Below, piece after piece: positions 1-52,600 of a stretch of 64,000 nucleotides of DNA (its first letter is position 1; each line of letters opens with the position of its first letter). The notes under the pieces were generated by a model. The model did no database searches, was not told the DNA's origin, and saw nothing but the letters and a program-made list of their open reading frames with translations. The stretch spans positions 124,001-188,000 of the forward strand of contig DF236986.1 in assembly GCA_000708835.1 (NCBI GenBank), written 5' to 3'. This DNA comes from Klebsormidium nitens. Lineage: Eukaryota; Plantae; Klebsormidiophyceae. The position numbers and the translations under genes are program-made.

Positions 1-3000
1 AGATGGTGCTACCCTTCTAAACTTCACCCAAGGCAACCTCTTAAACAATGAGATGGCATGCTGCTGGGTTGTGCCGGATGCAGGGGCAGAACTGATAGCT
101 TATGAGCGACGTGCTTAGCGCCTGGTGTTCCATACCATAGCTGATCCTCCCCTTGACTCTCCCCGCTCCCTGACACAAGCGCGTCCACAGGATGTGGTGG
201 CTGCGCCTAGTGAGGAGTTCCTCATCGCCCGCAAACGAGACCACCCATCACATACAAACACGTAGCATACCTTACGCTCCCTTTGTGTTCTCCCTCAGGC
301 ACATTTATGGGCATGCTGCTCGGCAACGTGAACGTCGTCGCCGCACGGCGCGAGGTGCGCTTTAAGGTGAAGGAGGAGTACAACACGTACCGTGACCGCA
401 CCGCGCTCGTCTTCCTCACCTTCCCCTCCGTGCTGCTCTTCCTAAAGCACTATTATGCGGGCCAGTGCCTGCCGGGACTGCTCGTGACAGCCTACTCCGC
501 GTGGCTGCTCTTCTTCTACACGAGCCTCGCGCTGCGCGAAAACATTCTCAAGATCAATGGGAGTGACATCCGGCCCTGGTAAGTGTGTTTGTCAATTTGG
601 GGTCTCTGGAATTGTTTATCTGACTTTTTTTATAGATACCAGTGTTTGGCCTTGAACTTGAGGCTAAGCGAGTCGTTTTTGCCTTTTCAGTGTAACCAAC
701 GATGGAGTCTGGGGTTGTTCTGCGGGCTTGTCTGATGATACTTTTCACGGTAGAGTTGAAACCTGCGGGCATGAATGTTGTTACCGTTGCGGTACAGTCC
801 ATCTTTTCTTGCACGAACAGGGTTTGCACATGGAACCTCTATAAACACAGAGCGCATCGAGATCTGCCCCTGGACCGTGACAGAGTCGCTCAACTTCCGT
901 TCAATCGCATTCCCAGTTCTTCAGGTAATATCAACACCAAAGCTTTGCCAGACTGCGGGTTCCCAGCCTGACTTGAGACGCGACAATATGACACACTCTG
1001 AATACAGTCGCTTAACCTCATTCTGACCACTCTCTTAACCCCTTCCAGGTGGATTCAGCACCACTACTTCGCCATGCTGATGGCTCCCAGCCTGACTTAC
1101 GACGCGAAATTATGACGCGGTCAGAAAATAGTGGCTTAACCTCATCCTGACCACTCTCTTAACCTTGCCAGGTTGATCCAGCACCACTACTTCGCCATGC
1201 CGATGGTGCTGGTCAGCCTGACTTGGGACGCGACGATATGACACACTCTGAAACCAGTCGCTTAACCTCATCCTGACCACTCTCTTAAACCTCCCAGGTG
1301 GATCCAGCACCACTACTTTGCCATGCTGATGGCTTCCCGCCTGTAACCAGATCCGTAAGTTTCTTGCAATACCAGTTGCTTACCCTAACCACCTTCTTAA
1401 ACCTTCCAGGTGGATCCAGCACCACGACTTCGCCATGCTAATGGCTCCCCGCCTGTTTGAGACGCAACATTACGACGAACTGATAACAGTGGCTTAACCT
1501 CACCCTAACCATTCGCTTAACCCTTCCAGGTGGATCCAGCACCACTACTTCGCCATGCTGATGGCGCTGGTCAGCCTGACGTGGGGCGTGGAGGGCTCCG
1601 ACTGCCTCCAGAAGCAGGAGAGCGTCAGCCTGTTCCTCCTGTGGGCCGTCATGCAGGGCGTCGTGATGCTGCTCCAGAATCGCTACCAGAGGCGACGCAT
1701 GTACACCCGCATTGCTTTGGGAAAGGTGCGCTGCAATTCATTGGAATGGGGCGTCAGAAAACGGGTCATGGAGAACATGGATTTGCGGCCACTCTCCGCG
1801 AGCGCCCTTGGCTAAAATTTCAGGGCCGATCAATGATTAACCTTGATGACGAGATAATCCCAATTAGTCGATTCGAAGGGTGATAGCTGAGGGAAATCCT
1901 TGAAAGCTGGCCGGGAGTCCGGGTCCCTTTTCCATCCACTCGGTCAAGTGGGGCTTCGTGGTACCATGGCGACCCTCATTTGGTCAAGAAATAGTCGCTG
2001 AGAGTGCAAGAGGCCATGTTGGTGCTGCTTGTTGGGCTCTTTCTCCGACGACGGCTATTGAGAGGAGAGGCGTAACAACCGTACGCAAGTTCGTCAGTTC
2101 CCCGTCCATTCACTGGCATGTCGTCATTCTGGCCGCTGTCTGTCCTCACGGCTTGAAGTCCGCTCGCTTTCTGCACGTTTGTAATACATTTCCATTTCTT
2201 CGACAGCATCAATTCTTCCGTTCTTTGAGCATTCAACCTCGGATCACACCACTTCATTGATCGGTCTTGATTGGGGGATGTCAAGAAGTTGCTTTGACTG
2301 TTGCCCAGGCCAGCTTTGCACTGCGTACCGATCGAACGCCCCTGTTGTGCAGGCTGGGAGGATGGACGTGGTTTGGGGCGAAAGCGCCGGAGTCAAAGGG
2401 CAGCTGTGGGTTCTGTACCCGCTTCTCTTTGCCCTCCAGGTAAGACTGCGGCGAAGAGAGTTTTTTCACCAACTCCACATGACCGACTGCCCGCTCATTC
2501 TGCTTAGCAGATCGTGTGCTGTCCTTCCCGATTCGTGAGACGCCATTGACCCAGCTCGGGTGCAGTGAGATTGTTTTGAATATGTTCCGAATGCAACATG
2601 TTGACTTTTGTAAATCTCTTTGGGTTGTCGTTAAGTTCGAACTGTCTCGCGAGTTGCTGGGCGCTGCAAGGAAGCTGTACATGCAGAAAGCGCTTCTGGC
2701 AGAAGCAGTTTTCCAAGATCTCATCCAACTCGCTCTCTTTGCAGGGCTTTCAGTTCTACATTGGCTCAAGATTGATAATGTCGTCAATCTTCGTTTCCTA
2801 CGAATGGCAGGTGAGTTTCGACGAACTTATCCAGATCTGTTGCCCCATCGTGGAGTTAGCCACTTTCTCGTTTGTCCAGTCCAATCTTCGAGTTCGAGCA
2901 GACATTCTGGACGTGAACATATGCACTCCCTTTTTATTGTGAGAGGCTCGTCCTTGAACTTGCGCCCTTTTTAAATGCAACTCTCAATTTTTCGACTTAT

Positions 3001-3196
3001 TCAATTCGTTCTCGCCTCTGCGCAGATTGTGGCTTGTGGGGTTCTTCTAATCATAATGGCAGTCGGGAACTTCCTGAATACTGTCGCAACGCTAGCTACG
3101 AAGGCCAAGATCAAGAACAAGATGAACAGGAAGCGGAAGGAGGTGAGCGAAACCATCGCTCGTACTTTCAGTGGTCCTCCAAAGAAGACCCTTTAG
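1..3196 (+). CDS. TMEM120: TMEM120/TMPIT family membrane protein, 5'-truncated by the window. Exons (1-32 tentative), 299-578, 1530-1725, 2353-2439, 2745-2810, 3026-3196
   Basis: Spliced translation gives ...LRENILKINGSDIRPW|WIQHHYFAMLMALVSLTW...LQNRYQRRRMYTRIALGK|AGRMDVVWGESAGVKGQLW...EWQ|IVACGVLLIIMAVGNFLNTV..., which I recognise as the plant TMEM120 signature. All internal junctions are GT-AG with matching phases. Stop TAG at 3194-3196. Confidence 0.92.
905..1529 (+). repeat. Intronic tandem array of about 120 bp units, each a copy of the 3' splice site plus the first ~50 nt of the TMEM120 exon at 1530
   Basis: The motif cttaacc..ccag|GTGGATCCAGCACCACTACTTCGCCATG recurs with exon-like starts at 925 (very degenerate), 1049, 1172, 1298 and 1410, before the real exon at 1530. 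Spacings are 124, 123, 126, 112 and 120. Confidence 0.93.
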
Positions 3197-3950
3197 GTCA
3201 CGGCAGGGTGCTAGCCTCACAGGAACCGACTAGTCTGGTTTGTCGGTTCTCTGTTGCTTTGAGTAGGTTTAGGAGCAAGGGAGAGGGTCTGTCACAGCGT
3301 CCAACAGTTCTGTTGCAAGAGACAAGCTTGTCACAAACTAGCTCCGTAACCCTCTAGCTGAAAGCAGTCCTTGTCATCGCACCAACAAGACTCTCTTGCA
3401 CCTATGAAAACGGCAACTTCGGTTCATTTTTGAAAGAGTGTTATGAGCATGCTTGCGTCCACATGTACCTTGGAGAAGCATGTCATATTATGCAATGGAT
3501 GGATGCAGAGACTCTGTGCAGCTGGCTCCAGCAGCAGTGCTAGATACTAACGTGACTAGAGAAAATGCATTCGGATCCATTTGTTAAGTAGGATAGTGTG
3601 TACGTTATACACATACGCGCGGCGTCTTAAGACCTCTCGCACATGTCACTGCATCTCATGATAACAATCAAGCCAAGTGCGCCTTTATTCCACATTACCG
3701 CAACAAAGACCAGGCGGCCTTCTAAGTCAAGCTCGGCAAGCCACAGCTGCTACAGGTTGCAGCAAGCAACTAGGTGCCAAGCCTGACAGGTATAGGATGG
3801 CAGCATGCAGGTCAAAACGGATGACGAACTTGCTCGCACCAACAATGCCCTTTCGAGCTCTTGTCAACAATGTATCCAGAGGCAAAAGGTGCCCATCTTA
3901 CATTGCCCAAACACTGGTCTCCGCGGCTGACTTAGACTCAAGTCTACAGA

Positions 3951-5509
3951 TCAGATTGGCTTGATCTTGAAATGGAGTCCGATCAAAGAGAATACTAAGC
4001 ACTTCAGGTCCTGCACAGAATGGATACGAATCAGCCTGAGCTTTGCAGCACACAGCCCCAATGGACATCTCTGTTGGGTATCTTTTCGAGATCAAGATGT
4101 TTGCGAGTATTTACCGAATTCAGCCCTAGTACAGATGATGATGCGCGTACCATGATATCGCTCTGATAACTGAGAGGCATGACAATCACAAGTAGAGTGC
4201 GAGGGTTCCTTAGCAGAACAAACTCTCCAGTCATCTCAGATAAGCCCAATTGACATCAAGCCATATTCCCCAGGCTACGTCCCACGTACTATTTTAGATT
4301 TGAAACCAGTGATGGTAGAAGGAAGATAACATACGGAACTAGAAAGGGTGCACTTACCTGCACAAGGTAGTAGAAGACTCTCAACCCCTCTGGATCTTTG
4401 CTGCTCTGCACGTCCAGCAGCGACCCAATCTTTGCTGTCGTGAACGAGATGTGTTCATTCTTCAGAACGACCTCTAGCTCCTGCTTCCCGACCCTGTCTG
4501 GTAGCGGCCAATTGGCGTCGTCTTCCTTCATGATCTGGAAAGCCACAAGATGATAAGCGGTTTGGTTTTTGGCAACCAATCAGGGTCACCCTCTACTGCC
4601 AATTCTCAACATGTGCAGAAAAGCAAGCCACGAGCAGACTCCTTAAAGGAATAAAGCCGCACACTTGCCGTGTAATGAGCAACTGGCTCCTGACATGCTC
4701 CCCACAGTTAGCGCAGGATAGTACCTCACAGCAAACTTCTGCTTCCTGTCAATTGTCAAAGGAGGAATAAGAGCAGCTGCTGATTGATCACATCAGTTGT
4801 CATACTTCCCATGAAATCGTAACGACCTCAAGCAGAACAAACGGGCCGAACTAAGGTAGCTACTGTCAAACATTTTGCGCCACCACCTTAATTTCTGTTC
4901 AAATAATCGAGGTTCTTGAATAGTAACACAGAAAGGCCAAAAGTAGGGGGCCGGAAAGAATCCACGATAGAACTTCTGCTTCAGGTGAAAGGAGCAGAGC
5001 GCCACCCCAACTGCTAACTACAAATCGTTCCGATGAAGTGGCACAAAGGAATCAAGAATGCAAGCGACATGGATATTTACAACTACCCAAAGCGCAAGCA
5101 CGTATTAGCGGAGCTGCTTTTAAACAGGAGGCAAAGCAAACCATGCTCATCAGGCTTACACTACTGCCTGCAAATGGTCCGCCCTGAGTGAAACCACCAC
5201 CATGTCCGATTTGCTGCGGGTGAGCGACAATCGATCAACCTATTTTCCGTCATGAACGGAACCGATAGACAAATGTCTCCTCACAGCAAACATACCACCC
5301 ACCTCTGCGTCTTCGATTATTCTTCTGACTTCATCCAGCACCGCCTGCGTCACATACACCTCTTTCCTGATCATCGTGTCGTTCTTGTAGTTGGAGTTGT
5401 TTGCATAGCGCAGCTTGCCGTCTGGCCTAAACTCAAACTCCAGGAACTCATGGCCAAACTTCCCCTTGTGTCCGACATAATACCGCACATAGAAGTCACT
5501 ATCTGCCAT
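3951..5509 (-). CDS. MAGO: Mago nashi, exon junction complex core protein (147 aa). Exons 5509-5303, 4534-4358, 4010-3951
   Basis: [50 protein letters not shown]...|[21 protein letters not shown]...[13 protein letters not shown]|[19 protein letters not shown]. Near-invariant Mago sequence; both introns are phase-0 GT-AG. Confidence 0.98.
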
Positions 5510-5995
5510 GATGCTGGCGGCAAAAATCAATCAGCACAAGCTGATTCCGTCGCCCAACGAAGCTCAGTTTCAGGGGGTATTTGGAGCCTCTTCCACCAAT
5601 TGCCAGCGGTTTCGCAAATGCCCTCTTCCAATCCTCCACTATAAACTCTTGTTTCTCGACAATCCTCTTGCTTTGCCTACCCTCTCCTAAGGAAGCGTGC
5701 TGAAAGGAGAATTTGATCGAGGGGCGATCTGGAAGCGCCTGAACGTTGAAGTTTCTCTTCAGTCTTGAGTTGCTGCCACTGGAGAAGGCGGCCTTCCCTT
5801 TTCCCCTTGCTGTTCTACGTCGTCTGCTGAACAGAATTGGTACCCCGCAGTCAATACCTGAAAACTGGTTGCCAGGGGACCAAGATACTGATTCTACGTG
5901 ACCTTCCAAATCTTTCTGTGGGGTGCAGCACTTTCCCTCGTTTGAACACAAAATTCTGCACAGCGAAGTGGTAGCTCACATATAGCTCACAAGTA

Positions 5996-6324
5996 GGGCG
6001 GTCACATATGAGTTCTCGGGGAAGTGGGGAGTGTTCCCTGAGGGAGCGCATGCTCCCCGAGAATCTGCTTTGGTCATATTTTATTCAGGGACACATCGCG
6101 CGAAACGTTAAAGCTTCCCGATATCTACGGCGAGGCAGACTGTCCGATGACTGACCGCCGACCGTCCCCTAGTATTTTTACCGGCGTCCCTGAGGGGCGT
6201 AGCGTCCCCCAGAATATCGAGTTGAAATTCTGGGGGACGAATTCACCGGTTTTCGGTCCCTGAGGGACGGGAATTCGGTCCCTGAGGGACGGTGCCCTCC
6301 GAAAATGTTCATATGTGACCGCCC
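5996..6324. mobile_element. MITE-like element (329 bp) with 16-bp perfect TIRs and a TA target-site duplication
   Basis: GGGCGGTCACATATGA at 5996-6011 and its reverse complement TCATATGTGACCGCCC at 6309-6324. TA flanks both ends (5994-5995, 6325-6326). The interior has four TCCCTGAGGG motifs and a CGTCCCCCAGAAT...ATTCTGGGGGACG inverted repeat, and no convincing ORF. Confidence 0.82.
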
Positions 6325-14707: not shown

Positions 14708-17563
14708 GGACCGGCGGTTCATCTGCACGTGAGGAAAGTGTGTTGTTTCGTTAGTGGATAAATGACGAGTTGCATCACAATGACATGGTTGTTTTAAAAA
14801 TCACTGTTGACTTGACTTGATGATGACTTTGCTTTTGACTACGGGTTTGTAAAGCAAGGCTTTCGAGATCAGGTGATCTGTTGAGAGTTGCATAAGGAAA
14901 AGGAAAAGACCGCAGAGGTACATTCTGAAGAAAGGAAGGATGTCTTGCTCTTGCATCTCGCCGAATGCTTCATAGACACCGAAACTTCAATCTTATCGAT
15001 GCCGAATGAGAAGCTGTGCCTCAAACACGCTGTGGACAAAGGTTTCCAAAACGAGGAAGCCATCAATCAAGGCTAACATATCCATCCAGTTCCATTCAAT
15101 CGCAAAATAAACGCATCAGCTTAAGCCTTACAGAAACGTTCAAGACAGAATGAATGTGAATCATTCGAGGCCAAATAATTTCAAAACCGACTCAAGAAGG
15201 GTCTCTCTAAGTTTAAGCAATCTTGAACTCTCAGAGGAGAGACACCGAGGACCACTAGGTCAGCTAGAAAGAAGGACAAGTTTGAACAAAATTGCACGCT
15301 TTCCACGCACCATCAGGTGAGGAGGAAATCAAATGAGGATTCGCATCAAGATAGAGAAAACGTCAGCGGAAAGCTTACATTGCAGCCGGCGCCAATCCAA
15401 TGCATCCTCTTCTGCTTCCAGGTACAGTTGAGCTCTGTTGAGCAGGCTGTTGATGCGGATGTGGAGCAGAACGCAGCAGGTGCGTGATATCTTTTTGGCA
15501 GGAGCTAATGCGTGAGAGGAATTGTCTGCGAAGTCCGCTGAAAGAGGTGATTTGATTTATTGAATTGGACGAAAGACGTCGGAACTCAAGCAAGTGCTAG
15601 TACTTTATACTCCCTACAACACACTCCATTTGACCTGCTGTGGCAGCAGAATTCCTTCACTGCTCTCACCAGATAACTCATCTTTCTGATAACTTCAAGG
15701 CAGAGAGCGTCTGTTGGAAAGTCAGCTTCCCGGAAGCCGGTCAGAATACCTCCTTCCACGAAGGATCATGTTACTTGCATGCGCAGGGCGGCCCAGCTAG
15801 CGCGCGGGCGCCGCGCCTTGTATTGTTACCGTTGAACGTCGGGGCCGCGGGGGTTTGGAAGAGGTTTTGAATTGACGGCGCGGCTGAAGAACGCAACGCG
15901 CCGCCGCCGCTATGCGCCGCGGCCGCACGCACTAGTACCGGTCGCCGAGTTTGAGAGCCTGAGGGCAGATAGGGAATGAGGCAAGCTTCGGATCCATTAA
16001 TTCGGATCCTTTTAAGAATGGCCACTGATGAGGGAGCTGTATTCGTCAAGACTATCAAATTTAGAAGCCAAGTAAGACGGCAACGAATGAGAGGCCTCCA
16101 GTGAGCGAGACGCAGTATGAAGACCGGGACGACGCTTCTGATTTCTATAACTCGCTCACGTGCGTTAAAAAGTCCGGGCCTTGAAGGAAAGGAAAGAGTA
16201 CTGGGCGTTTTCCCCCCCCCTCTCGTGAATCATTTCGGGGCAGATTGGGTTCTGGCGTCTTGACGCCTGTGATGCATCACAAAAGTCGCTGCAAAGGCGC
16301 CTTGCAGCAGCAGCATTAAAATTTTCATAGCTGACCTCAGTTATAAAAATGTCGGACCATGCCCGTGAAGCACTGGGATCTCTTGAAAGTGTCAGTTGGC
16401 CCAATTTTATTTGGAACAATTTTATGTGGAAAGTCTGAGTAAGTGAATGCGTACTCATTGATTGTTCTAGTTGGCGTACCTCTCAAGTGTCAGACTCTCG
16501 GGTATTCAACTTCGGCATCTTTTAGAAGATTCTCAAGATCTATTTTTGCCTCTGTCTCGATTCTACGCTTTGTCTGTGCTCACTCAGTGGTGGGCAGTGA
16601 TTAGACCAGCTTGGGATAGCAGTCAGGACCTATGGGTGCGGTTCGCTAAGTTCTTCAAGAGATACCAGGTGGGCCGGATCCCCAGTCCGTGGCGGCAAGT
16701 TCAGTCTTACAGCTCGAGGACACAGCTTTCAACGGGTCCCATATCGTCGCGTCGCCGTTCACTAGTCAGTTCTGATAGGGATAAACTTAAATAGTGCTTC
16801 GAAGTACGTATTAAATCTGGTCTTCAAGTGTCCTGACGATTCGAAAAGTTGAACCGCTGACGATCGAACCCAGGATGTTTTCCAGCGACTCCGCTAAAAT
16901 GGAAAGAGGAGAGCGCGATGAGCCCTTGATCTCAGGTAAATTTAGGCCTCAGAACTTCAACCTTGGAAGACGAGGGCTCAGCGCATTTCACCGTAAAAAG
17001 GGCAGCTTCAAGGCGATGGCGCGCTCACCAACTGATCTAGCATTGAAGTTATCGAAGGTCGCCGGAACTTTTTCATGCTGAGACCATAGCAAGCTCCAAA
17101 TTGCAGCGAGTTTTTTGTGCAGCGTCGATCCTCAATCCGGAACGGTGGCTCGAAGCAGGAGAGGTACTCAAACCAATCTTGCAGCAAGGGGGCATGCAGC
17201 TGACCAGAGAGAGGAGGCAATGCAAGCATTGCAACACTGATGTTTTGGAAAGAAACGTGTTGCAAGGAGTACGTGGGCTCGCAACATCTGCGAAGCCCCT
17301 CAGGGTCCTAGCGGAGAGCTGTAGCTGGATAGCCTTCACTTTGATTAGTTGAATACATTTCTCCAACTTGCAGAGAAAGAGGAAGCGCAAAAAGCTTTCA
17401 ATGCATGTAAGCTAAGTGCTCAAATGCAGGCTTCAGACCGATTGAGAGAAAGGTTCTTTCCCCCAATAAGCTGTTGAGTGCAGGTTCGAACGCAAGATCT
17501 GCTTGGCCCTTTCACTGCATTCTAATCAAAACGAACCTTCAAGGCAAAGAAGAATCGAGCAGA

Positions 17564-20500
17564 ATGGCTTCTCCACAAGCAGCGCCCTCTGCTTCGAAAC
17601 GCGCGCCCTGCGCCCGAGCGTCCGCTCCCATTGAACCCTTCAACCCCCCGAACAACAGCTGCAGCAGCTTCGGAGACCTGCCGCCATGCATGCAGCAGCG
17701 CATCTTCTCGCTCCTCCCAACGGACGCGGCCGACATTCTGCGCGCGTCGGGCGTCTGCCGCGCGTGGGCCGCGGCCGCGGACGACGCGCTCGCGGCCGCG
17801 CCGCGCGTCGGCTTCGCCGTCGCGATCTGGGGCCGCCGCTCGCTGCTCTCGTGGCTGTCCTCTCTCAGCACCGTGCTCAACAAGTGCGCGCGCCTACGCG
17901 ACCTCGAGGTTTCGCTCGCGTGCGCGCTCCCCGAGCCGCTCGAACCGGTCGGGATCGAGGTTTTGCTGGAGGGGTTTCTGCGCCAGCTGGCAACACTGTC
18001 CGTCGTCAAAACCCGCCTGGAAGGGTTTGCGCTCAGCCTGTCGGGCGACCTCGCGCAGCCGACGCGCGGGCTCGACTTCGTCCTCGCGGCCGCGGCGCTC
18101 AAGCGGTTAGCGCTAACCAACGTGGTCATCCCCGCGCACGGGCTAAACCTCCGGCGCACCGACCGCTGCGCGGCGTCGCTGGGCGCCCTCGCGCTCACGG
18201 GCGTCGAGATCGCGGCCGACGACCTGTGCGCGCTCGTCGCGTACCTGCGGGGTTTGGAGGTTTTGGAGCTGTGCGGCACGGGCGCCGCGGACCTGCACGT
18301 GGCGTCTGAGGGTTTGAGGGTTTTGCGCGTGTCGAACCACGCCGTGGGCGTGCTGGACCTGAAGACGCCCAAGCTGGAGGATCTGCGAGTGGAGAAGGGG
18401 CGGGCGAACATGGGCTTCACCCTGTGCACCGAGGTGAGGTACTTTCCGGTGTGAGCTCGGTTTGTTTTGTTTGATATGCGAAACAACGGTCAGGACAAAC
18501 TCAACCAGGTGCAGCAAAGTGTTGTAACGGCGAAGCGAATTCTCTTGGGAAGCCCTGTCAAGCGTACTTTCTAGAAACCAAAACCGGTTCGCTGCAGATG
18601 TGCGCTCGCAAAACGTTTATTGACGGAGGTATGAAATCGTGGGAAGAATTCACAGAAAGGGTATCTCTAAATGTGCCCATCTAAGTAATTTTGACTCCCA
18701 ATCTAGAGTGCCTCGTAAGCGGACGTTTTTGACGGACCGTCTTTCTCGTTCCTCTGGAATTTTGGAATTTCGAGATATCTACGTGGACGCCTCTCCATAA
18801 ACAGATCGTACCTAAGTGTTCAGCGTTCATAACAGGGTTCACAAATCAGAAGCTTAATGCGACTTGTTGACAGAGCTCAAAGGGGGCTTTCAGTCCTTGC
18901 AGAAGGCTGGTCAAAACCGCGCCGCCAAGAAAACTTTCGGTAGATAGCTTTTCTACTATCGGACACGTTTGCATCCCTTCTTAGCTGAGCACTAGAATGC
19001 AAACCCACCTACGGCTGGTACTGGGCGGTTTTCGAACCGACATTCCAATTCAAAAGTTTTGGCACCGTTCCGTCCGTCAGGCAAATCCAATCTGAGCATC
19101 GCAGCTCGACGTAGCGGATACGGTCCCTGATCAAAAGGTTGACTGAAAGTCAAAGTCAGAACGCGACTCGGAGGTGCGCCCCAGTTTTGGGCGGGCCTTC
19201 CACAAAACACTTGAAAAGTGGTGCAAAGGATCCAAGTGCAGATTCGACACCCGCCGGCTGAGAACGCAGCTACATTTTTACCCGATACACTTCGTCAAAG
19301 TCAAATTCAGAAGGGACGCCAATGCAGGTTACAGGAGTGCCAGACTGCGCCTACTCGAGGGCGGCCCTCCAAACTTCCGGTTGGGTCTGTGCGACTGATC
19401 GCATTTCATTCTCCCGCAGAATATGTCCAAGTCTCGCCGGCTGAGCATCGCAACTACGGCGGAGCCAACACGATCACTAGATTCGCCATCAAAAGCAGAA
19501 CGCACGAGATCAAAAAGCCGGAAATGTATTGAGTGCGCCGGGCCTTCACATTCCTGGCCAGTTTTCTGCTAATGAATGAATACGAACAATCTCGCAGGGC
19601 AAGTCGACTTCCTCTGACTGTGCATCGCAGCCACGAGGGACCCAATACAACTCCTGACAGCAATCACGGGAATCTGAAAGTCCCGACGCAAATGTTAAAT
19701 GCATTCCTGGGTGCGCACATGCTTGGGCGGGCGATCAATACCCACAATCATTTTGATTCTCCCGCAGGGCAAGTCCAAGATCCGCCGCCCAAGCGTCGCA
19801 ACTACAATTGCGCGGAAACGCGCATCCCCTGTTATGTCTGAACGCTTGCAAACAAAAGTTATACGAAACGCGAATTGCGAACTGCGAACTGCGCCCACTC
19901 TTCGGTTTTTCCAAACCAGATTTTGAACTCGCGTAGGGCAAGTCCAAGATTCGGCGGCTGAGCATCACGCTGCAGGGCCTGGGGTACCTGCGCATCTTCG
20001 GCGAGCTGCGCGAGGTGGAGGCCGTGACGCTGTCCGCCAACTGCTGGGACTGGACCGGCAACATCGCGTCCGTCCTGCAGGTGCGCGGAATCGGAACGGG
20101 CGGAACGGTCTTGTGCTTTTGTTCTGAAAACGAATGTTCGGAACTTCTTTGTTTGACCCCTGATAGACACACGGAGGGATGACGACAGGGGGAGATGAAG
20201 ATTGCGAAGCCCTGTGTGCTTCTCTGGAAACGCTTTAAAGGGAGAACTTTTTCAAAGACCAAACCGTGTTCACCTATGTTTTTTCAAGGTTTGTACAATA
20301 TACGACGGGGTTCTCAGTTGCGCCCGTGTCTATGTTGCCAGATAACAGCTCCACTTTCGTTCGTCTTGAAAGCAGCCTTGCAACAAGCAAAACCTCTCTC
20401 TGTTAGCCAGCATGTCAGACAGCCCAGGAGTCTCCAGCAAGGAGTGCCTTACTTTCCTCGGTTCCCTACAATCCCTTCATCTCAAATCCCTAAAGTTTGA

Positions 20501-21162
20501 AATCATTCCATCTGCGGAACGGCAGACGAATCCGTCAGGAGTTCAAGACTCAAGAATTCGGAATTGGACTCAAGCTATCGCAGAACAGCCCCCCATTCTG
20601 ACAGACCCCCCCTTGAATCTCAGTGTTGTTATCACTCTGCCTGCAGAACAGCCCCCGCCTGCTCCACCTCGCCCTCGAGGCCGCGCGCGACACCCCCCCC
20701 GACTACCCCGACATCGGCAACATGCTCGCGCGCATGACCACCGCCGCGGAACCGCTCGACCTCTTCTCCTTCCCCGGTCGCTTCCCCCGGCTCGTCTCCC
20801 TCACCCTCCCGCTGGGCATGACGGAGCAAATGGTGCTCGGGGCGCGCGTTTCCGGCGACCAATCGCCACAGTTCGCCGCGCTGGAGTCGCTGGAAGTCGC
20901 TATCTGGCAGCCCAGCGCGGCGCATCTGCGGTGGCTGGAGGGCCTCGTCGAGGCGGCGCCCCGCCTGAAACGCGTTGCGATTGCGATCGTGGCCAAGTGG
21001 GACAAGGCCCTGCTGCACTTCAGTCTGCGCCAGTGTAGCGCGAAAGCGTGCATCGAGTATCTGGACGATACCGGAGAGAATCTGTACACGTTCTTTCACG
21101 GACTGTGCGCGCTGCAGAAGCGGAGCCCGGGCGTCGACATCGCGTGGGAGAAGATCGAGTAG
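17564..21162 (+). CDS. F-box/LRR (RNI-like) protein (about 509 aa). Exons 17564-18433, 19937-20080, 20647-21162
   Basis: F-box motif FGDLPPCMQQRIFSLLP..DILRASGVCRAW, followed by LxxLxL repeats (LRDLEVSL, LKRLALTNV, LEVLELCG, LEDLRV, LVSLTLP, LESLEVAI). Strong GC3 codon bias; both introns are phase-0 GT-AG. Confidence 0.85.
19070..19936 (+). repeat. Intronic array of about 170 bp units, each a degenerate copy of the acceptor plus start of F-box exon 2
   Basis: The real exon starts ag|GGCAAGTCCAAGATTCGGCGGCTGAGCATC at 19937. Copies start at 19768 (cag|ggcaagtccaagatccgccgcc), 19598 (cag|ggcaagtcgac), 19420 (cag|aatatgtccaagtctcgccggctgagcatc), about 19230-19245 (weak) and 19081 (cag|gcaaatccaatctgagcatc). 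Confidence 0.78.
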
Positions 21163-22284
21163 GGATTCCGTTCCGGTAGCGGGTTCCGCAGCGGGAGTGC
21201 GAGGGAAAAAGCCTGGTGGCGGAAGATTGTAGCCGAAGGGTGAGAGGGTCGACCTTTGGAAGGGTGGCGAAAGATTGTGTTTTTGGGTTCTCAAGAGGAT
21301 TGAGATTTGTCAGTTCGTACGGTAGTTCAGATGCCGGGGAATGCATTTCCATGTTTGAGAGGAAGATAATTGAGGAACTCCAATCAGAATTTTTGCGATG
21401 GTGGCGACAGAGTCAATTGAGTCTGAACACTAAACGTGTCCTAGGCATTCACAATCACATTCACTGGTGACGTTGGGCCCGTGAACCGCACTGACTACAC
21501 ATCAAGCTCAGGCTGTTGTTGGGTCACCGGATAGATCCGTCAAGGCTCCTTTTCAATCATGCATCATGTACCAAAAGTCCGACATTTCATGACGATAGCA
21601 TTGTGAACTTAGTGTCTGCCTAGCATCGTTGCTGTTGAAGCAGATTGACTAGAAGAATCAGTGTATACTCGTATGGGCCCGAATACAATGTCATCGGGCC
21701 AGTATCTATCTTTGTTGTAGTACGTAACGGTGTGGAACCAATTGAGACATGACGCTTGCGCAGCCCGAGGCGTGGAGCTAGCTGCGATCCGTCGCGGCGA
21801 CACGGCGAGCATGCGTCGGATGAAAGTCGAACAAGCTTGAGATGGTATATATAAGCCAAGATATATAACAGTGGGCTCCAACCAATCGACCGTCCGCAAA
21901 CCAGGCATCATTATACTTCGAGCCCGACCGATACGTGGAGGCAAGAAAGTATGATATATCCTTCATTTTGGTGTATGGACTCCAACGAAGGCCACATGCT
22001 CATCAGAACGAGTCTGCAAAGTGGCCTACCACAGTGATGCAAGAGCTTCAGAGCCGAGGTGGACCCCATGAGGATTCATCACATGCAAAGGACTGACCCT
22101 CAGCGGGCCTTCGTTGAAGCGCTTTAGAAGGTGGCAAGCATATGGCGAATGTTACCATCTCCAGCTCAGAACGCAGGGCACGGTTGGGTCTAGATCGTCT
22201 CAACCAGTGCATTCTTTCCAACAGCATGTGCACTGGCATTCAACACACGGAGGCGGCATGCAAAACAATTTTGCACGTTTAACT

Positions 22285-38550: not shown

Positions 38551-38680
38551 TGCTAGGCTGCCAACTTACAGCTAGGCCTACAGGCTGTGAATCCATGGTT
38601 CGCTCATATCAGTCCTGCTAGGCTAGGCTGCCAACTTACAGGGCAACCACCTGTGAATTCATGGTTCGCTCATGTCAGTC
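38551..38680. repeat. Intergenic imperfect tandem duplication with a 65-70 bp unit
   Basis: GCTAGGCTGCCAACTTACAG at about 38552 and 38622. CTGTGAAT(C/T)CATGGTTCGCTCAT(A/G)TCAGTC at about 38585 and 38650. Confidence 0.8.
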
Positions 38681-43400: not shown

Positions 43401-43649
43401 ATCCGATCATGCCAAAAATGGCTACAAGGTGATTTCCCTTGCATCGGGGTTTTGCACATGGGCCCTACCAGCTCATAATTGACAGGCCATGTAGCACAAT
43501 CGGCCTTTTGCACATTGGCCCAACCAAACAGTCAATGACAGGCTATGTAGCATCATCTTGGCAATTGCTGGACACTTGCACCAGCTTAAGCAAAGTTCCA
43601 ATTCTAGAATCTCAGAAGCTGGTGAAGGTACCCTCGTGTTTGTGTTTCA

Positions 43650-46600
43650 TCACAGGTCCTTGGATGCGTTACCGAAGTCCCCCTCGAAGTCTGTCCAATC
43701 ATCCAGGTGCACGGTCTCGAATGGTCCCTGAAATAGGAGGGACAAAAAGGAGTTGGTTTAACAACTGGCAATTGGGACTCGACGGAATTCTCGGACTTGC
43801 ATTTAGCACAGCCATTCAAAAGCCAGGGAACAACGAGAAGAGTCGAAAGGCACTCCAAAAACCAAGCACAAGTGCCGCAGCCATCATTTTGGACTGAACG
43901 CAAGAGCAAGCAGCATCCGCATGCAAGAGCCAGCTAAAAGACACATCAAGAAACATAAGCGTCTCTACTTCATTGCCGTTAGTAACTTCGGCCGAGTACC
44001 CTCCACCCAAGCCCGTCGCTTGTAAACATAACGACAACATCGACAACGACCTTCACAATGATACCTAGAGCAATGGTCGTTTGCAAGCCAGATTTTGGTG
44101 AAGTCGATTGGAGGGCTCTGAATCAGGCAGAAATCCATACCGGGTTTGAACTTGGCCGCTTCATGCCGGGCCAATTCCGGAGGGACCGTGCTGTTGCTGT
44201 TGACCAGCATCTGCTTAAGATCGTAGAACAGGTCCGTGTCCTGGTTAGTCAAGAACGACGTTGCCACGCCCTTCTTTCCGGCACGCCCAGTACGACCTGC
44301 AACGGAATGAGAACAAACGTCAGAAAGTTTCAGACCGAAAACCGTGAAATTGCATGGAACCTTTTCAGAAGACTGACAGAGGTCGACCTGCAACTCTCCA
44401 GAAATGCAATCGTGCATCTACACAAAACCAGTTGCGTTCTTGGCATATGAAACGATTGCGAAGCAAAGCGTGAGTGAGATTAGGAACATCGAGAGCAAAG
44501 GCTGATCTTCGTCTCAGTTGAAGAACGGTGCTCGAAAGCGAGCGATGACCTTTGGGAACCAATTCACTGCTACAATGCTCGTCTGAAAAAAACATTGCCG
44601 CAAGAAAAGGTACGGTGATTCCTGAGGACGAGAGCAGAAGCGCCATTAAAGGTTTAAGGACGTACCGATTCGGTGAGTGTACTGGTCAATGGTAGTTGGC
44701 ATGTCGTAGTTTACCACAGCAGCGACGTCCTGCAGACACCGAGGGGGGACGGACGTCAGTCCGTCTCAAAAGGACCCCCGGAAACAAATCTCAGACTTTA
44801 AACCATACCCGATAATTCCGACCTTTGCCTAAGGAAGTTCTCTAGCAAATGGCCGCGATTGTGCAGTCCTTACAATGGTCAAGCTGCTCGACAATGGGTG
44901 TTCGGATGCGAAGTCTGTGGGAGCGCACAGGTAAGTAGTTTGATCCTTTCATCCGCAGCACCAGAAAGGCTATAACTCGATCACTGGACACCCGCAGAAC
45001 TTCTTGACACTTTCGTGACTTTACATGAAGAGAAACCTATTTGGAAGAAGAAGTTCTAGTTGCGTAATAGGGGCAACCAAAACATGCTTACATGCGCCTG
45101 AATAGAAACGGTAAAGGGCGCAAGCCGAAGAGTCACTTGGGAACAAGTACGGCGCTGAAGAACCTCGTGCGAATGTGCAGCAGATGAGACCGTGCTGATC
45201 AAATCGAGGAAAACCGACAAGGTTGTCACCAACCAAACTACGGTACTGTCCGCACAAGGAAGGCGGTACAGAGGGGCATACATCACACCAGTGCAATACC
45301 CATGCACGAATGGAGTAGGAACCCACCGGAATATCGATACCACGCCCCGCCACGTCGGTAGCAACTAGTATGGTGAACTTCTTCTGGCGGAAGCCTTCGA
45401 GGGAGACCTCGCGCTGGTCCTGGATCTTGCCTCCGTGGAGTGACGTCACCTTGAAGCCGTCGCGCTCCAGCTGGCGTGCGAGACCGTCCGCCGACTTCTT
45501 TTGGTTCACGAAGATGATGGCCTGCCGCTCGCCCAAGTCCTCCAGGAGGCGCTTCAGCCTGGTTAGAAAGGGGGTTAGGAGATGGTTAGAACCAGGTCTG
45601 AACCGGATTACCAGAAAACAATTGGGTTAAGGTTTTTGACGTTTTCTGGTTCCGGAGATGTTGGCCTGCCGCTCGCCCAAGTCCTCCAAAATGCGCTTCA
45701 GCCTGGTTAGAGGTATGTTGGAGGGGGGTCAGGGTGGGGTTTGGAGCGGGTTAACAGAAACTAGATGAACATTCGTGCGTTCTGATCACTCAATAACGCT
45801 GATCAGCCTCTTCGCAAAGGTGAGCAAAGGGTTCTGATAACGTTAAAGGACGGTTGCGGGAGGCTTACTTGGGAGGGCAAATAGAGCGGGTTAGACAATC
45901 AAGGGCCTCAGATCCGGTCCGAAAGGATGACTGCCTGACTTTGCCCAAGTCCACACAATGGACTTCAGACCAGCACTTTCTTGACGTATATTGGATTAGC
46001 GAGAGCTGAGAAGTATAAAAAAAGAGGAGCTGAGGTATGGTTGTGTTTATGAGATACAGCCAGAAAATCGAGGCAAACTACAGTCCAACGAATCTGAAAG
46101 ATCCTCTTCAACCCTGCATATCTGACCGGTTGTCCAACGTTGGAAACGGAGACATGGGCAGCAATTGGTCAAGGACCCTGACCGCCTTCTTCTCAACGCA
46201 ACAGCAGGAAGAGACTCCTCGAGAAAGGTTAGAAGCGACAGAGCAGCTCACTAGTCCTTCTTTCGTTTTCATTCTTCACGAACCACGGTCTACTCGAGTG
46301 GACAAAGTCGCACGGAAACACCAAAGAGAACACCAGTTCAAACGAAAAGAAAGGCAGGCAACGAGCCCAAGGTCGCAGTCAGGACCCCTCTCACCGGTCC
46401 TTCTTCTCACTCTCATTCTTGACCATCGTCACCACGGTCTTCTCGAGCATAACCAAAAAGAAATGAGCACAAACAAAGGCAAGATCAAGGTAAANNNNNN
46501 NNNNNNNNNNNNNNCAAAGCCGCAGCCAAAGAAGATCTTCTCACTTGTCCTTCTTCTCGTTCTCGCCCTTGACCATCATGACCGTCTGTGTGATGAGGTC

Positions 46601-49600
46601 CGTCGTCTTCCCTGCGTGCCCGATCGTCACGACAACTGGCTGGCGCAGGTACTTGCGCGCAAGGCGCTCCACCGCTGGCGGCATCGTGGCACTGAACATG
46701 TACGTCGTCCGGTACAGCTTGTCGCCCTCCAGCTCCTGCGGAAAGAAAAAAACGTCAGAGTGACGTCAGCATTGACAGAAATCTGAGTTCAGGTGCGCAA
46801 GGTGTGCGAGGCGCTCCAGCGCTGGCGGCATCGCCGCGCTAGTTGTGTAAGTAGTGCGGTACAGCTCGTCGCCCCCCGGCTCCTGCGGAAAGTGACATCA
46901 GAATGAGCTCAGCATCGGTGACGTTGGGTGACGTAGACTTATGGTCTTCAAATTCTCGACACCTTGGTGACAACTACGAACAAACGCTGCATCGTCGCCC
47001 AGTAGAGCTTGTCGCCCTCCAGCTCCTGCGAAGAGTGACCTCAAAGTGACGTCAGCAACGACAATTTTGGGTGGTATGAAAACGTGTAAGTGACGAGCAA
47101 GTTGCTGCATTGTTGTGCTGAACATGTCCGTCGTGTATGAGGCCGCAATGCCCTCCAAAGCTACTACGAAGAAAGACAATAAAAGGGGCCTACAAGTTGC
47201 AGCACCGTTCACCTTGAACATGCAAGGTGTCCTCAAACTTCTGCGTGCAAGTGACTTCAGGATGCCATCAACTCTTTAACGGTCAAGGGCCTTGGCCGGA
47301 GTCCCTTCTAAAAAGCTCTGCCCCTTCTCAGAAGAGCGCTTTTGGCCCTCCCTGTGCGGATTCAGCCATTCTGGCCAAACCGTTGAGCCAAGAAAACCGA
47401 CACAGGCGCTGGAAAGCCCAGACAATAGTCGTCCAACGCAAAAGTCAATCTTAATATTGACTAGGATTTGATGGCTCTTACCGCACCCGGTCCGTCTGAG
47501 CAAGACAAAGCTGATATTCATCCGAGAAGGAATGCAATGGTTCAAGGCAGAGTTTCCTTCAGAGCAAGAGGGAAGCGCCGACACTTACTTCGTCTTCGTT
47601 CTCGGGCTTCAGGTTAGAGGACGGCATCAGGTCCAGCACCGCAGCCACCTGCAGGGGACACGTGGCATCAGTTCCGCCGTTCGTATCCAAGGGCTGATCG
47701 CAAACTCAGTTTGGACCATTTTTAAGGGGTCGCCGACCGATCTTAGCTCGGCTCTCTACTCCAAGCCTTGCTTTTTCCGCCGGAGCTCTCGGAAGTCTAT
47801 AGACCGATCCTCAAAGCCCAGTTAATACACGCCAAATTCGAGGAATCTGTTCGGCGAAGACAGCGTCCAGATAATCCCCTCGTAGATCCCGAAACATTTG
47901 GCACGTTGAACATCGAAGGAAAGTCACTTTAACGTTTGCGGGGCGGATCCATAGATATCCTCGGCAGTCTGGAACTACGGCGCCGAGCTTAACATGGATG
48001 TGGGCTCCAATTGCACGCAGATCGTGCATAAAAACAAGTCCGACCCGGCGGGAAGGGTGGCTTTGCCAAAGACATCGACAACAATCAAAAGGGCAGTAAC
48101 GTCCAGATGAACGAAACGATAACAGAGGAATTTTCCAACATTTTAAGGGACTGATCAAGACAACACAGAGCGACATTTCACTCTCAAAAATCCTTTATTC
48201 CAAAACGTAGAGCAATCAGACTTCAGCATCTGAATGAGAGGTAGCCACGTGCCTGCGGCTCGAAGCCCATGTCGATCATGCGGTCCGCCTCGTCGAGCAC
48301 GATGTAGTGGCACTGCTGCAGCACCGCGTAGCGCCGCTCGAGGCAGTCCAGCATGCGCCCGGGGGTTGCGATCACGATCTCGCACCCCTGTCGCAGCTTG
48401 AAGCCCTGCTCCTCGATGGACTGGCCGCCGACAATGGAAGTCACGCGGAAGTCCTGCAGGGGATAGATAGTATTTGAATAGTCAACAGTAATAGATTAGT
48501 CAATTTGCGGCTCGGGATCTCGCACCCCTGCCGCAACTTGAAGCCCTGCTCATCGATGGACTGGCCGCCCACGATCGAAGTGACGCGGAAGTCCTGTAGA
48601 AAGTGTGTAGAATAAAGGGGTCAATTTCCTGGCTCGGATTCGCGTTATGCTCATCAAGCATTCGGGGCGGACGGCCAACGTGGAGGTCACTCGGAACACG
48701 TGCTACCGGAAGCAAGTTCAAGTAGGGGAAACTTTGCTTCGAAAATTCGCGGGTCCGGAACTCTGCAGCCGCAGAGCACCCGGCATGCTTCAAGGACTGG
48801 CCGCCAAAACATAGGCGAAAGTCTTGTCGTTGCAAGGCGAGACCGTGCCGAGCACGAGTAAACGAAGACCGTTGTCAAACGGGGCCAAACCATGAAGGAC
48901 GCGAACTTGACGGTCTCTCCTTCGAACCTGGTTGACTTACGAGGCAACGCAGAGCCCGGCTGCTCCAACGGGGAATCAAACCCGCGCATGCTGACAGCTC
49001 AAACAGAAACTTAACTTCCTTAGTCCGACCTAAGACGCCGAAAAGATAAAACAAAAAATCGAGAGCCAAAGAAGGTGACCATGACCACAGCAACCTTGAC
49101 GTCCACTTCCTCAATCTACCGCGAGAGCTTGCGTGTGAACCACGTATACTTACCAAGCGAAGTACTGTCGACGCAAGGCAAAGCGGAAGAAAAGTGAAAA
49201 AAAGAGAACACAGACGGTAAAGACGGGCCTTGCCATGAAGGACGCGAACTTGACGGTCTCTTCTTCAAGCTCCTGCGCGAGCTCGCGCACGGGCGCCATG
49301 AAGGTCACCAAGCAAAAGTCCTCTATAGGCAAGACGAGACGAAAGAGAAACCAGAGAAAGAGAAGAAAAAATTTGACGTTTCAAAAGGAGCCTCACCATG
49401 AAGGACGCAAACCTGACGGTCTGTTCCTCGATCTGCTGCGCCAGCTCGTGCGTGGGCGCCAAGAATGAGATTCAAGCGCGATTGATACTCAAGCTGAAGT
49501 CCTATCAACGCAAGGCGAGACAAAGGATTCTAGCAGACAACCAAGAACATTATTGAATCGAAGACGGGCCTTACCATGAAGGACGCAAACTTGACAGTCT

Positions 49601-52600
49601 CCTCTTCGATCTGCTGCGCCAGCTCGCGCGTGGGCGCCATGATGAGCGCGTATGGCCCGAGCGCCTCGTTCTCCTCTGTCAGCGGGGGGAGCTTGCTGAT
49701 GTACACCAGCATGGGCAGCACGAAAGCAGCCGTCTTGCCAGAACCTGCAACCACAACCACAAACACTTACAGTCAACCATTGTGACAAGTATGCGGATAC
49801 TACAATGCTGAATTATTAGGACGAAGCGTGATGAGTAGCAAGATTGCCGGCCTGAAACGAGTAGGCTTAATCCTGGATTCGGAGTGGGAATGACTATGTA
49901 GCAAGCGACCGCAAACGTTATGGTTTCAGCGTTAGGTTGTGAGCTTAACCATCCTGAAGCTCATCAACCGAGACTCGAAGAGCTATGCAAAGTTAAACCA
50001 CGCAGAGGAGAGTCACTACACGAAGCCACACATGAAATCCTCATGCAATAAGGCGGGAGAGAGACGTCAAAAGCTGCTGATTCACAACGACTGTCCAGAT
50101 CAAAGCTGCCAGTGGATTGCCAACAGCAACGCTTGGAGCATTCTGACTCTAAGGAAAGATATTCGAACTCCAAGTCAAGGACATAAAACCAACAAACCAA
50201 GAAACGACGCACCTGTCTCGGCGATGCCAATGACGTCACGCTGTTGCAGCCCGAGCGGGATGGCGGCCATCTGGATGGGCGACGGCTTCGTGTAGCCGGC
50301 CTTCTCCACCGCTTGGAGCACCTCCTTGGTGAGCCCGCTCTCGTCCCAGTTGCGCATCGGCTTCGGGATGTTGGAGCCCTGTGCAGAAAGGCAGGTTTGT
50401 CAATCCGCTAATCTACAAAACAATTGAGAAAAAGGTAGACTACTTTCAAGGATTGCTCTTCTTGCAGTTGCAGTCTTGATCAGCACGCTCTCGTCCCAGT
50501 TGCGCATCAGCTCCGGAATGTTGGAGCCCTGTGGATAAGAGAGTGTGCTAAGTGTTTGTTGGCGTATCCCAAGAACTGTAGTTTGTGATAAGCATAATAT
50601 AGTCGAAACCGCAAAGTCAGAAGCTACTAACGGTGGTAATCTAATTGAAGCGCTCTATGACGTGTTGACCGAAACCATAGGGCCACACTGCGATGTAAAG
50701 TTGCACCTTGCTTGGGCACCGACTCTCGTTGATCCTTCTACATAAGCTTGCACTCTTGCGGGTACAAATCCGAAAACTTTTGCTCGTGTGTCTAATTGAC
50801 CATACAATTTGAAGGGAGACGTTCCGTTTAGCTCAATCAGAAAGGGAGAATACATTTCTCCGTGCCGAGACCACTGAAAAGTTTCTGCATGTTTTCCACG
50901 GCAATTGTAGATCAGCTCGTTTGGGACTGAGTACGCGAGGCAGAAGGGGTGACAAGGCTGGAGTGTGTGAGAAAGGGGGGTAAGCAAAGTAGAGGAGAGG
51001 GCGGCGCACATACCTTGAAAGAGATGTTGAAGTCCTCTCGGAAGATACGCCAGTCGCGCTCCGTCATTTGCGACAACTGCAGACACACGAGCGAGAACAT
51101 CTCAGCCTATGAGCAGCAAACCGCGTCAGAGTTTGCAGCGCGCTAACAGCGCCCCTCGTAACCACCTCAGGCCAACGCATCACTGAGCTCGCGCACCTTG
51201 ATGAGCTGCAAATAAGCTCTCTATTTAAAGATCTATTTGAAGACAATTATGAGGACTATTTTGCAGATCTATTTGGAGACTAATATGTAGACGAAGCGGG
51301 CAAACCTCTTTCTGTACTTATTCGCACCCCGAACGACCAAGAATCGTTTGGCGATATTGGCAGCTCACAATCAACAACCTTAAATAGAGAGCTTCCGTCA
51401 AGCATCCCCCTATCCCCACACCTCCTTAACCATCTGCACGCACCTTCTTCTGCGTCCAGTGCGCGTCGACGCGCATGTCGAACGACGAGTTGTACTCGTC
51501 GGCAGCGCGCGCCTTGCGTGCGTCCGACGCCCGTTCCTCCTCCGTCTGCACCTCGCCCGTCTCTTTCCGACGTTGCGCAAACAGCTCCTTCTCTTGCTGG
51601 GCGGCCGCCTGAGATGGGTTAAGCAGAGTCGGGTTAGCAAAGAGTCACGTGGACTCTCCGCGACGTGTGTTCAACACGTGCTTTTCCGGCGCTGCGCAAA
51701 CAGCTCCTTCTCTTGCTGGGCGGCCGCCTGAGACGGGTTCAGTGATACATACTTCCGGACAGTCGATTAACTTTTTCGCGGATGTTTCGTGACGTGCTCT
51801 CTCCAGCGCCGCGCAAACAACTCCTCACCTCGCTGAGCGGCCGTGAGATGGGAGGATGATGATCGAGTTGACGGAGGTTTCAATTTAGCTACTCGTAAGC
51901 CTGTGTCATAATATAACTCTCGTAGGGTCTGCCAACTCCTGCTTTTTCCACAGAATGGATTCGAATGTACCCGGAAAGTCGGTCTTATAGCTGCGGGATT
52001 CTTCTGTTTGAAATCGGCAAATGCTGAGGGCTCCCTGTCCTGGTATTTGAGTCAGACTTTACGAGTCTATTTGGCGGTTGACAGGCAGGCACATTTCTTG
52101 TTTGCGCTGAGCATCGAGTACAAAATGTGAGGGTCGCTCACCATTGAACGTCGTGCACGACTTCCAGACGCTGGAGTCACTCACGACCAGCATAAGGGCG
52201 GGAGAAACACAAGTATGCTGACAGACAGAAACTCTCAACCACAAACGTCCCGTTTGACAATTATAACCGGACCCCAAAACTTTCTGGCACGACTTGCTTC
52301 CAGAACCCAGCAAGTTGGACTTCAGATCCAGTCTCTTTCGTGAAGTAAAGCTCAACCGGACCTCGGAGTCCGCATTCAACTGAAAGGTCGAATACTTCCA
52401 CCTGATAAGAATGGTTTTTTAATCACCTAAAAGGTCAAGTACTTCAACTTAAAGGAAATGTGCGCTTACCTTCTTCTGCACCCTGACGTCAATCCCCGCC
52501 TTGAGGCCTCTCCCGAACAGCAGCTGCGCCTCGTGAGGGTTGTTGTATATCGGGTTGAGGTCGCGCGACGTGTCCTCGCCCGCCTCCCAGTCGAACGCAA

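Follow-up and report, generated by a model that had tools for sequence, protein, structure and literature searches.

How do introns come to contain repeated copies of the exon boundaries that enclose them? In the present study, we analysed a 64,000-nt stretch of the streptophyte alga Klebsormidium nitens NIES-2285 (GCA_000708835.1, scaffold DF236986.1:124001-188000; hereafter the window), in which copies of splice junctions lie inside the introns of four genes, namely TMEM120, an F-box gene, a beta-propeller gene and PRP28/DDX23. The original prediction, made from this stretch, explained the copies by an ongoing and polarised process in which new copies arise at the functional junction. Our results suggested that the arrays are probably ordinary minisatellite-type tandem duplications of roughly 60-200 bp within genes, which spanned a splice junction by chance. 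The evidence for this reading, and the points that weigh against it, are given below.

Anatomy of the Junction Arrays

The PRP28 junctions were set by spliced homology to the full-length PRP28 protein P0126, and the junctions of the other genes were defined by blocks conserved with related species together with the reading frames. The acceptor coordinate is the first exon base, and the donor coordinate is the first intron base. Arrays were detected using Tandem Repeats Finder (TRF), a gapless repeat search and self-BLAST. TRF alone recovered one of the 12 arrays (TMEM120, 964-1565, period 126, 5 copies) because the copies of the remaining 11 were too diverged; these were recovered by the gapless repeat search and self-BLAST.

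The repeat search, homology and conservation agreed on 12 exon-intron junctions bearing head-to-tail copies in the intron, as had been predicted: TMEM120 and the F-box gene had one each, the beta-propeller gene three and PRP28 seven (Table 1). Each array consisted of the working junction and one to four further copies in the adjacent intron (2-5 units), and we refer to the intronic copies as decoys. The acceptor-type copies comprised the intron tail, AG and 30-125 nt of the exon head, and were located upstream of the true exon; the donor-type copies comprised 35-72 nt of the exon tail, GT and the intron head, and were located downstream of the exon. This placement, which had been described beforehand, was seen throughout the 12 junctions. 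The periods were about 61-204 bp, were roughly constant within each array and matched those listed in the original prediction. All 12 arrays thus had the tandem head-to-tail arrangement and roughly constant period of a junction-spanning minisatellite, with a terminal monomer of exon sequence and splice site that was reiterated in the intron. The splice dinucleotide (AG or GT/GC) was intact in about 17 of the 21 decoys; as anticipated, some copies had lost it, including older ones such as the distal decoy of PRP28 array A1 (51843) and the 23026 copy of the beta-propeller array at 22803. AG/GT at the junction (the slash marks the exon boundary) occurred in TMEM120 alone among the arrays, and the motif AG/GTGGAT was intact in all five TMEM120 units.

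The open reading frame was continued only by the copy adjoining the exon, and the reading frames of the decoys ended in stops. These results agreed with the claim that the mRNA stays intact only if the proximal copy is used. In self-BLAST, no distant copies of the array units were found within the window, and each unit matched solely its own adjacent exon; therefore, the units represent local duplications and not dispersed elements. Introners and other transposable elements were ruled out on this ground. Mutually exclusive or alternative coding exons were also ruled out, since only one exon end was copied, the frames ran into stops and the changes in the decoys were mostly non-synonymous.

Table 1. 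Junction arrays and gene locations in the window (positions are those of the window; the dinucleotide of a decoy is given in brackets).
Feature	Span	Strand	True site	Decoys	Period (bp)
TMEM120 acceptor array	931-1588	+	exon 1530	1410, 1298, 1172, 1049 (all AG)	112-126
F-box acceptor copies	19404-19974	+	exon 19937	19768, about 19420	
Beta-propeller acceptor array	22751-23041	minus	exon 22803	22924 (AG), 23026 (AA, AG lost)	121, 102
Beta-propeller acceptor duplication	23879-24209	minus	exon 23994	24198	204
Beta-propeller acceptor	24853-24990	minus	about 24853	intron-tail repeat upstream	61
PRP28 A1 acceptor array	51561-51859	minus	exon 51608	51727 (AG), 51843 (AG lost)	119, 116
PRP28 A2 acceptor duplication	50325-50538	minus	exon 50378	50528	150
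PRP28 D3 donor array	48870-49646	minus	donor 49574	49396 (GT), 49233 (GC), 49079, 48890 (GT)	178, 163, 154, 189
PRP28 A4 acceptor duplication	48376-48599	minus	exon 48453	48593	140
PRP28 A5 acceptor array	46659-47165	minus	exon 46735	46882, 47025, about 47160	
PRP28 D6 donor array	46250-46583	minus	donor 46544	46394, about 46251	
PRP28 A7 acceptor duplication	45493-45711	minus	exon 45558	45702	144
TMEM120 gene	window start falls within gene	+			
Mago nashi exon	5243-5509	minus			
Beta-propeller gene	about 25430-22290	minus			
HSP90 gene	30.7-37.7 kb				
PRP28/DDX23 gene	about 55700-44100	minus			

D3 and A4 occupy a single 1.1 kb PRP28 intron (the exon ends at 49575 and the next starts at 48453) with four donor-side copies and one acceptor-side copy; therefore, copies of its own two boundaries make up much of this intron. 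The acceptor duplication at 23994 in the beta-propeller gene copied about 125 nt of the exon head, and the period-61 repeat at the acceptor near 24853 (repeat 24897-24988) was accompanied by a decayed exon-head copy. The F-box exon was supported by a block conserved with relatives that begins at 19935, and the intron bearing the F-box array measured 1497 bp in K. nitens versus 769 and 806 bp in two relatives.

Turnover of the Arrays between Relatives

The region from TMEM120 to the F-box gene was compared with Klebsormidium-like metagenome contigs of two species, species A (L002 and L005) and species B (L004 and L006). For PRP28, most genes returned by a metagenome scan were distant or poor in introns, long contigs of Klebsormidium were absent, and the top representative hits lay on very short contigs; the usable orthologous loci were obtained by following one exon open reading frame to its 90% cluster. 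They represented an A-like lineage (L090 together with L089, the latter being identical to L091 of a separate sequencing run) and a closer relative (L093).

The PRP28 exon blocks ended at identical positions in all relatives compared, which indicated that the introns are old. Since the intron positions were common to all relatives, existing introns have been lengthened and no new introns have been made. A tandem-duplication model of intron gain through internal gene duplication has reportedly been put forward by Rogers in 1989 and by Gao and Lynch in 2009. Intron gain of this kind (the Rogers model) was rejected for the arrays, as there was no new intron position relative to the relatives.

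The arrays themselves differed between lineages. None of the seven K. nitens PRP28 arrays was present in the A-like lineage, which had its own PRP28 arrays at three other junctions, with four copies at the acceptor of the exon starting at 49745 and copies on the donor side, downstream of the exons that end at 48253 and 52938. L093 had A1, D3, A4 and a decayed A2 in common with K. nitens, and added donor-side copies behind two other exons, which end at 48253 and 51441; the latter copy (L093 4608-4647 and 4752-4785) had no counterpart in K. nitens. About 11 of the 28 PRP28 junctions carried an array in at least one of the three lineages. Within TMEM120, K. nitens had a single arrayed junction, species A had two and species B had three. 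One TMEM120 junction was arrayed both in K. nitens and in one relative, and the unit tails there were unrelated (47-48% identity). At a HAUS4 acceptor, species A carried a 63-nt junction duplication whose copies were 96.6% identical (composite 16396-16517; L002 6534-6655), which indicated that the duplication is very recent. Because it is in frame (21 codons, no stop), either acceptor could yield a readable mRNA.

Array presence and copy number thus varied among K. nitens, L093, L090/L089 and the two TMEM120 relatives, which is the variation expected of minisatellites, here seen between relatives. The comparison of related species for copy number that had been proposed therefore gave a positive result. 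The largely different PRP28 and TMEM120 junctions arrayed in three Klebsormidium lineages, together with the nearly identical HAUS4 copies in a relative, also upheld the claim of an ongoing process. Compared at the sequence level, the lineages support the conclusion that arrays are gained and lost quickly and that their birth and death would be ongoing on an evolutionary scale.

Repeats that were falsely expanded or stitched during assembly could imitate such arrays, and one array (D6) does hold an assembly gap (46495-46514). We consider an artefact scarcely credible. The copies differ among themselves by 10-25%, which an assembler does not produce, and like arrays were found in independent Joint Genome Institute (JGI) and Logan assemblies of relatives; L089 and L091, independent assemblies of one organism from two runs, agreed base for base across an array. 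The gap in K. nitens, a run of N, sits in the D6 intron, 30 nt beyond the true donor and 61 nt before the first decoy, so that no reading frame crosses it. The D6 decoys beyond the gap are real; the 150-bp spacing across it is only as good as the gap estimate, and further copies could hide there. L093, the sole close relative found for PRP28, stops before the D6 intron.

Decay of the Copies

The identities of the intron tails and exon heads were measured on non-overlapping segments, with shuffled sequence as the control. The exon-derived part of the units was 85-91% identical to the working exon. The intron-derived part was 51-65% identical, and that of A2 and A4 was no better than shuffled sequence; the A7 intron tails were still alike (z = 6.1). 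Orthologous decoys of K. nitens and L093 were 76-77% identical, and third codon positions differed by 21% between the two. Since the divergence of the decoys matched that of the third codon positions, the decoys appear to evolve neutrally. Consistent with non-coding decay, changes on the decoy lineages had no synonymous bias (in A2, two were synonymous and four were not). Outside the decoys, the introns of K. nitens and L093 reached at most 57% identity and were barely alignable. Compared with the 21% divergence at third positions, this low identity indicated that introns turn over faster than substitution alone predicts, and it points to rapid intron turnover driven by insertions and deletions. 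Because the working exon is under constraint and only substitutions alter the decoy half, exon-derived halves remain detectable longer than intron halves or purely intronic duplications.

The short common stretch of A2 and A4 raised another possibility. In both, it was limited to 5-6 nt of intron and 53-77 nt of exon, and the rest of the unit scored z = 0.4 and 0.7. The two could accordingly be templated insertions formed in break repair, in which the exon head was copied some 60-95 nt upstream of the acceptor. This origin seems highly improbable to us. The periods of A2 and A4 lie within the range of the clear tandem arrays, and the graded residual similarity of the tails in A7, A5 and A1 suggests a continuum of decay. 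Both decoys are also older than the divergence from L093, which left time for the tails to turn over. The introns of these two lineages align poorly in general.

The decoys had been proposed as a record of ancestral exon sequence. A few of them do retain synonymous states of the ancestral exon that are no longer found in the K. nitens exon and can therefore help to polarise substitutions, but only at a handful of sites, so the proposal stands in this limited form. A similarly small number of sites suggests exchange (gene conversion) between decoy and exon within species. As regards polarity, the pairing of the L093 decoy with the K. nitens copies depended on the measure: global alignment paired it with the distal K. 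nitens copy, and position together with local identity paired it with the proximal copy.

Selection might keep the decoys for RNA processing, as alternative sites feeding nonsense-mediated decay (PRP28 is a splicing factor), as splicing enhancers or as kinetic spacers. The high share of decoys with an intact dinucleotide and near-identical flanking motifs would fit such a role, as would the longer persistence of the exon-derived halves and the proximal A1 decoy, which had no private change in 45 nt. We nevertheless regard selection as quite unlikely. The arrayed junctions differ by species, and orthologous junctions do without arrays; arrays occur in unrelated genes; orthologous decoys diverge at the rate of third codon positions; and the older copies noted above have lost the splice dinucleotide.

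Polarity and Period of Array Growth

According to the original prediction, the copies most distant from the junction tend to be the most decayed, and new copies arise at the functional junction and push older ones into the intron. A1 showed a gradient of identity with rank, so the first part was found at one array; identity to the true copy was not monotonic with rank in the TMEM120, D3 and A5 arrays. In TMEM120, the alternate distal units c1 and c3 were the most alike (tails 92% identical). The head of c2 was 93% identical to the true exon, reached further into it and grouped with the true copy, and a match at a 250-bp offset was observed. Taken together, these likenesses and the offset indicated that the TMEM120 array grew at least once by a two-unit duplication. 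Given this duplication and the non-monotonic identities, strict polarity was not supported as a general feature.

A nucleosome-related origin of the period did not find support either. Over all lineages, the shortest period was 61 bp and the longest 204 bp, the median was close to 144 bp and no sharp mode was seen. Splicing constraints explain this range equally well as nucleosomes: a unit on the acceptor side would be tolerated only with a branch site and tract of its own, and no tolerated unit may include an entire exon.

Based on these observations, we propose the following course of events. A tandem duplication that spans a junction would be tolerated, since the copy adjoining the rest of the exon still gives a normal mRNA. 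The extra copy would turn into intron and add a silent pseudo-splice-site, and the decoys are presumably left unspliced. Once two copies are present, unequal exchange or slippage could add or drop units, sometimes two together. The intron-derived half would decay fast, and the exon-derived half would stay recognisable because selection holds the working exon constant; the exon may now and then convert a decoy. Junction-spanning duplications would therefore outlast purely intronic ones in visibility, and introns would seem to be built from their own boundaries. The rate of array birth and death would be high in Klebsormidium and in at least one other green alga.

Is Duplication Biased to Junctions?

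The arrays could instead reflect mutation targeted to junctions. Breaks or template switches linked with splicing, with transcription or with nucleosomes positioned on exons would then turn exon boundaries into hotspots of 100-200-bp tandem duplication, so that introns grow from their ends. We examined this with a null model in which duplications of the observed sizes were placed randomly in PRP28 after its arrays had been collapsed, and placements inside an exon or swallowing a whole exon were discarded. The probability that a random duplication spans a junction was 0.44, giving p = 0.003 for seven of seven arrays and p of about 4e-4 for 12 of 13. Within the genes of the window, all 12 arrays with a period of at least 60 bp touched a junction. 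The test assumes equal detectability, which is false given the different decay of exon and intron halves. Only about 3-4 arrays have intron halves alike enough for detection without the exon half, and when the test was restricted to these, the excess fell to about p = 0.04-0.09.

Other observations could be read in favour of targeted mutation, namely the share of PRP28 junctions that are arrayed in one lineage or another, the median period, and the TMEM120 junction arrayed in two lineages with unrelated tails, which fits independent origins. Against these, the periods have no sharp mode, coincident junctions are expected by chance at a junction occupancy of 9-25%, tandem duplications exist in intergenic DNA too (38552-38680 and 43443-43554), and the highly expressed HSP90 gene has no arrays, contrary to a simple link to transcription. 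Together with the weakened excess, these results make junction-targeted mutation rather doubtful in our judgement. The broader proposal appears unlikely, namely that exon boundaries in Klebsormidium and some other green algae are mutational hotspots at which splicing, transcription or nucleosomes positioned on exons are coupled to tandem duplications of about 100-200 bp; if it were true, introns would grow mainly from their ends, and decoys would exchange sequence with the working exon.

Three observations weigh against chance duplication as a full account of the arrays. First, the junction excess was significant against random placement, and detection bias may account for it only in part. Second, the intron halves of A2 and A4 had no similarity though their exon halves were about 90% identical; simple neutral decay predicts about 80% identity for the intron halves. 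Third, the arrays cluster, with seven at the roughly 28 PRP28 junctions and three in TMEM120 of one relative, and no arrays were found in K. nitens HAUS4 (about 20 junctions), HSP90 or Mago nashi. The longer recognisability of exon-derived halves could lie behind the junction enrichment, and a junction bias of duplication is unproven from 64 kb of sequence.

Density and Occurrence in Other Organisms

The PRP28 region of K. nitens contained 5.0 short-range arrays per 10 kb and L093 contained 5.5, compared with 1.7 in the whole window. In a control of 80 PRP28 loci from other organisms, most of them intron-poor genes, the value was 0.64 per 10 kb. An intron-rich alga with 57% GC from brine metagenomes (L072/L077) had clear donor-side arrays at two PRP28 exon ends; one of them begins at the GFEPQ/GT donor, the same junction, and a third array abuts an exon end. 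In L072, these arrays lie at 2812-3130, 4461-4660 and 5893-6260 (also in L077 and L075), with periods of 106, 56 and 119. Judged from these contigs, junction arrays are not specific to Klebsormidium, as an unrelated green alga appears to have them in PRP28.

As a separate observation, P0122, P0138, P0155, P0176 and other database proteins matched a 67-residue PRP28 exon two or three times. Possibly, the gene models behind these proteins of other organisms include duplicated parts of an exon that were read through.

Other Features of the Window

The window also contains genes for HAUS4 and an FKBP-like protein. The Mago nashi exon matched a K. nitens protein, and across 15.5 kb the window was 100% identical to the contig coding for that protein. 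In species A, the F-box block was inverted relative to HAUS4 and Mago nashi (L005 5915-9105 versus window 17675-21170), an arrangement not seen in K. nitens or species B. The K. nitens PRP28 exon ending in GFEPQ (window 48246-48253, minus strand) is followed by GCACGT, which looks like the start of a GC-AG intron, and the next PRP28 exon (47651-47592) carries the protein on as expected. The CT-rich low-complexity segment at 53030-55440 (+ strand) is the N-terminal PRP28 coding region on the minus strand, rich in Arg, Glu, Asp and Ser, and does not represent a junction array. The two intergenic duplications, located downstream of HSP90 (38552-38680, period 66-70) and of PRP28 (43443-43554, period 56), are apparently non-coding, have about two copies each and were the only non-junction arrays. 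An inverted repeat of about 75 nt with 80% identity lies at 58133-58203 and 58316-58390, its arms 113 bp apart.

Comparison with Known Systems

The arrays had been put forward as a possibly undescribed genome-wide system. Novelty as a system was not supported, since junction-spanning minisatellites, duplications of intron 3' and exon 5' sequence, and repeats at intron ends have all been published (PMC1557585, PMC4974935, PMC3887541). Previous studies have reported human minisatellites whose first monomer spans an exon-intron boundary, in F7 IVS7 (37 bp), CBS, LMNB2 (100 bp), PDGF (81 bp) and the interferon-induced gene 6-16 (PMC1557585). These minisatellites reiterate the donor site, and the authentic site is used as a rule (PMC1557585). 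The Klebsormidium arrays resemble the F7 type in that they are head-to-tail, begin in the exon, reiterate the splice site in the intron and vary in copy number. They differ in the greater size of their units (mostly 100-200 bp) and in the divergence of these (75-90% identity). Moreover, acceptor junctions carry them as well as donor junctions, and within a single gene as many as a quarter of the junctions are occupied. In Klebsormidium, the site presumed to be spliced is the one adjoining the exon, where the reading frame continues. The arrays offer natural test cases for how the authentic site is chosen among near-identical competitors.

In potato, a tandem duplication comprising an intron's 3' side plus the following exon's 5' side was described in a gene encoding RNA-dependent RNA polymerase (RdRp) (PMC4974935), and internal gene duplications have been reported to be common (PMC4974935, PMC3443670). 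A tandem-duplication model of intron gain was considered by Hellsten in 2011 (PMC3265369) and in a review (PMC3443670). The arrays share with such events a short intragenic tandem duplication bearing splice signals; unlike in that model, the Klebsormidium introns sit at old positions and were lengthened, and the copies stack into arrays. Mutually exclusive exons of the Dscam type likewise start from an intragenic tandem duplication followed by divergence of the copies, but the Klebsormidium copies are only part of an exon, have lost the frame and accumulate non-synonymous changes.

In green algae, introns and the vicinity of intron-exon junctions are enriched in tandem repeats (Zhao et al. 2014, PMC3887541; Chlamydomonas v6, PMC9940879), and assembly gaps in Chlamydomonas fall in genic tandem repeats (PMC9940879). 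Those surveys agree with ours in concerning green-lineage genomes with tandem repeats concentrated in introns towards their ends. Their units are 1-50 bp long, and exon sequence plus splice site within the units was not reported there. Arrays of the present kind mislead gene prediction and cause assembly gaps, one of which lies inside an array here. In the literature, no description of such arrays in Klebsormidium was found, and neither introns nor tandem repeats come up in the main text of the K. nitens genome paper.

If the density observed here holds genome-wide, tandem duplication at exon boundaries would count as a measurable way for introns to lengthen in a streptophyte alga that stands close to land plants, and it would provide a steady supply of pseudo-splice-sites for the spliceosome to ignore. 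Collectively, the individual arrays belong to a known kind, and what is possibly new compared with the systems above is how dense they are, that they lie on both sides of introns and how they turn over between congeners.

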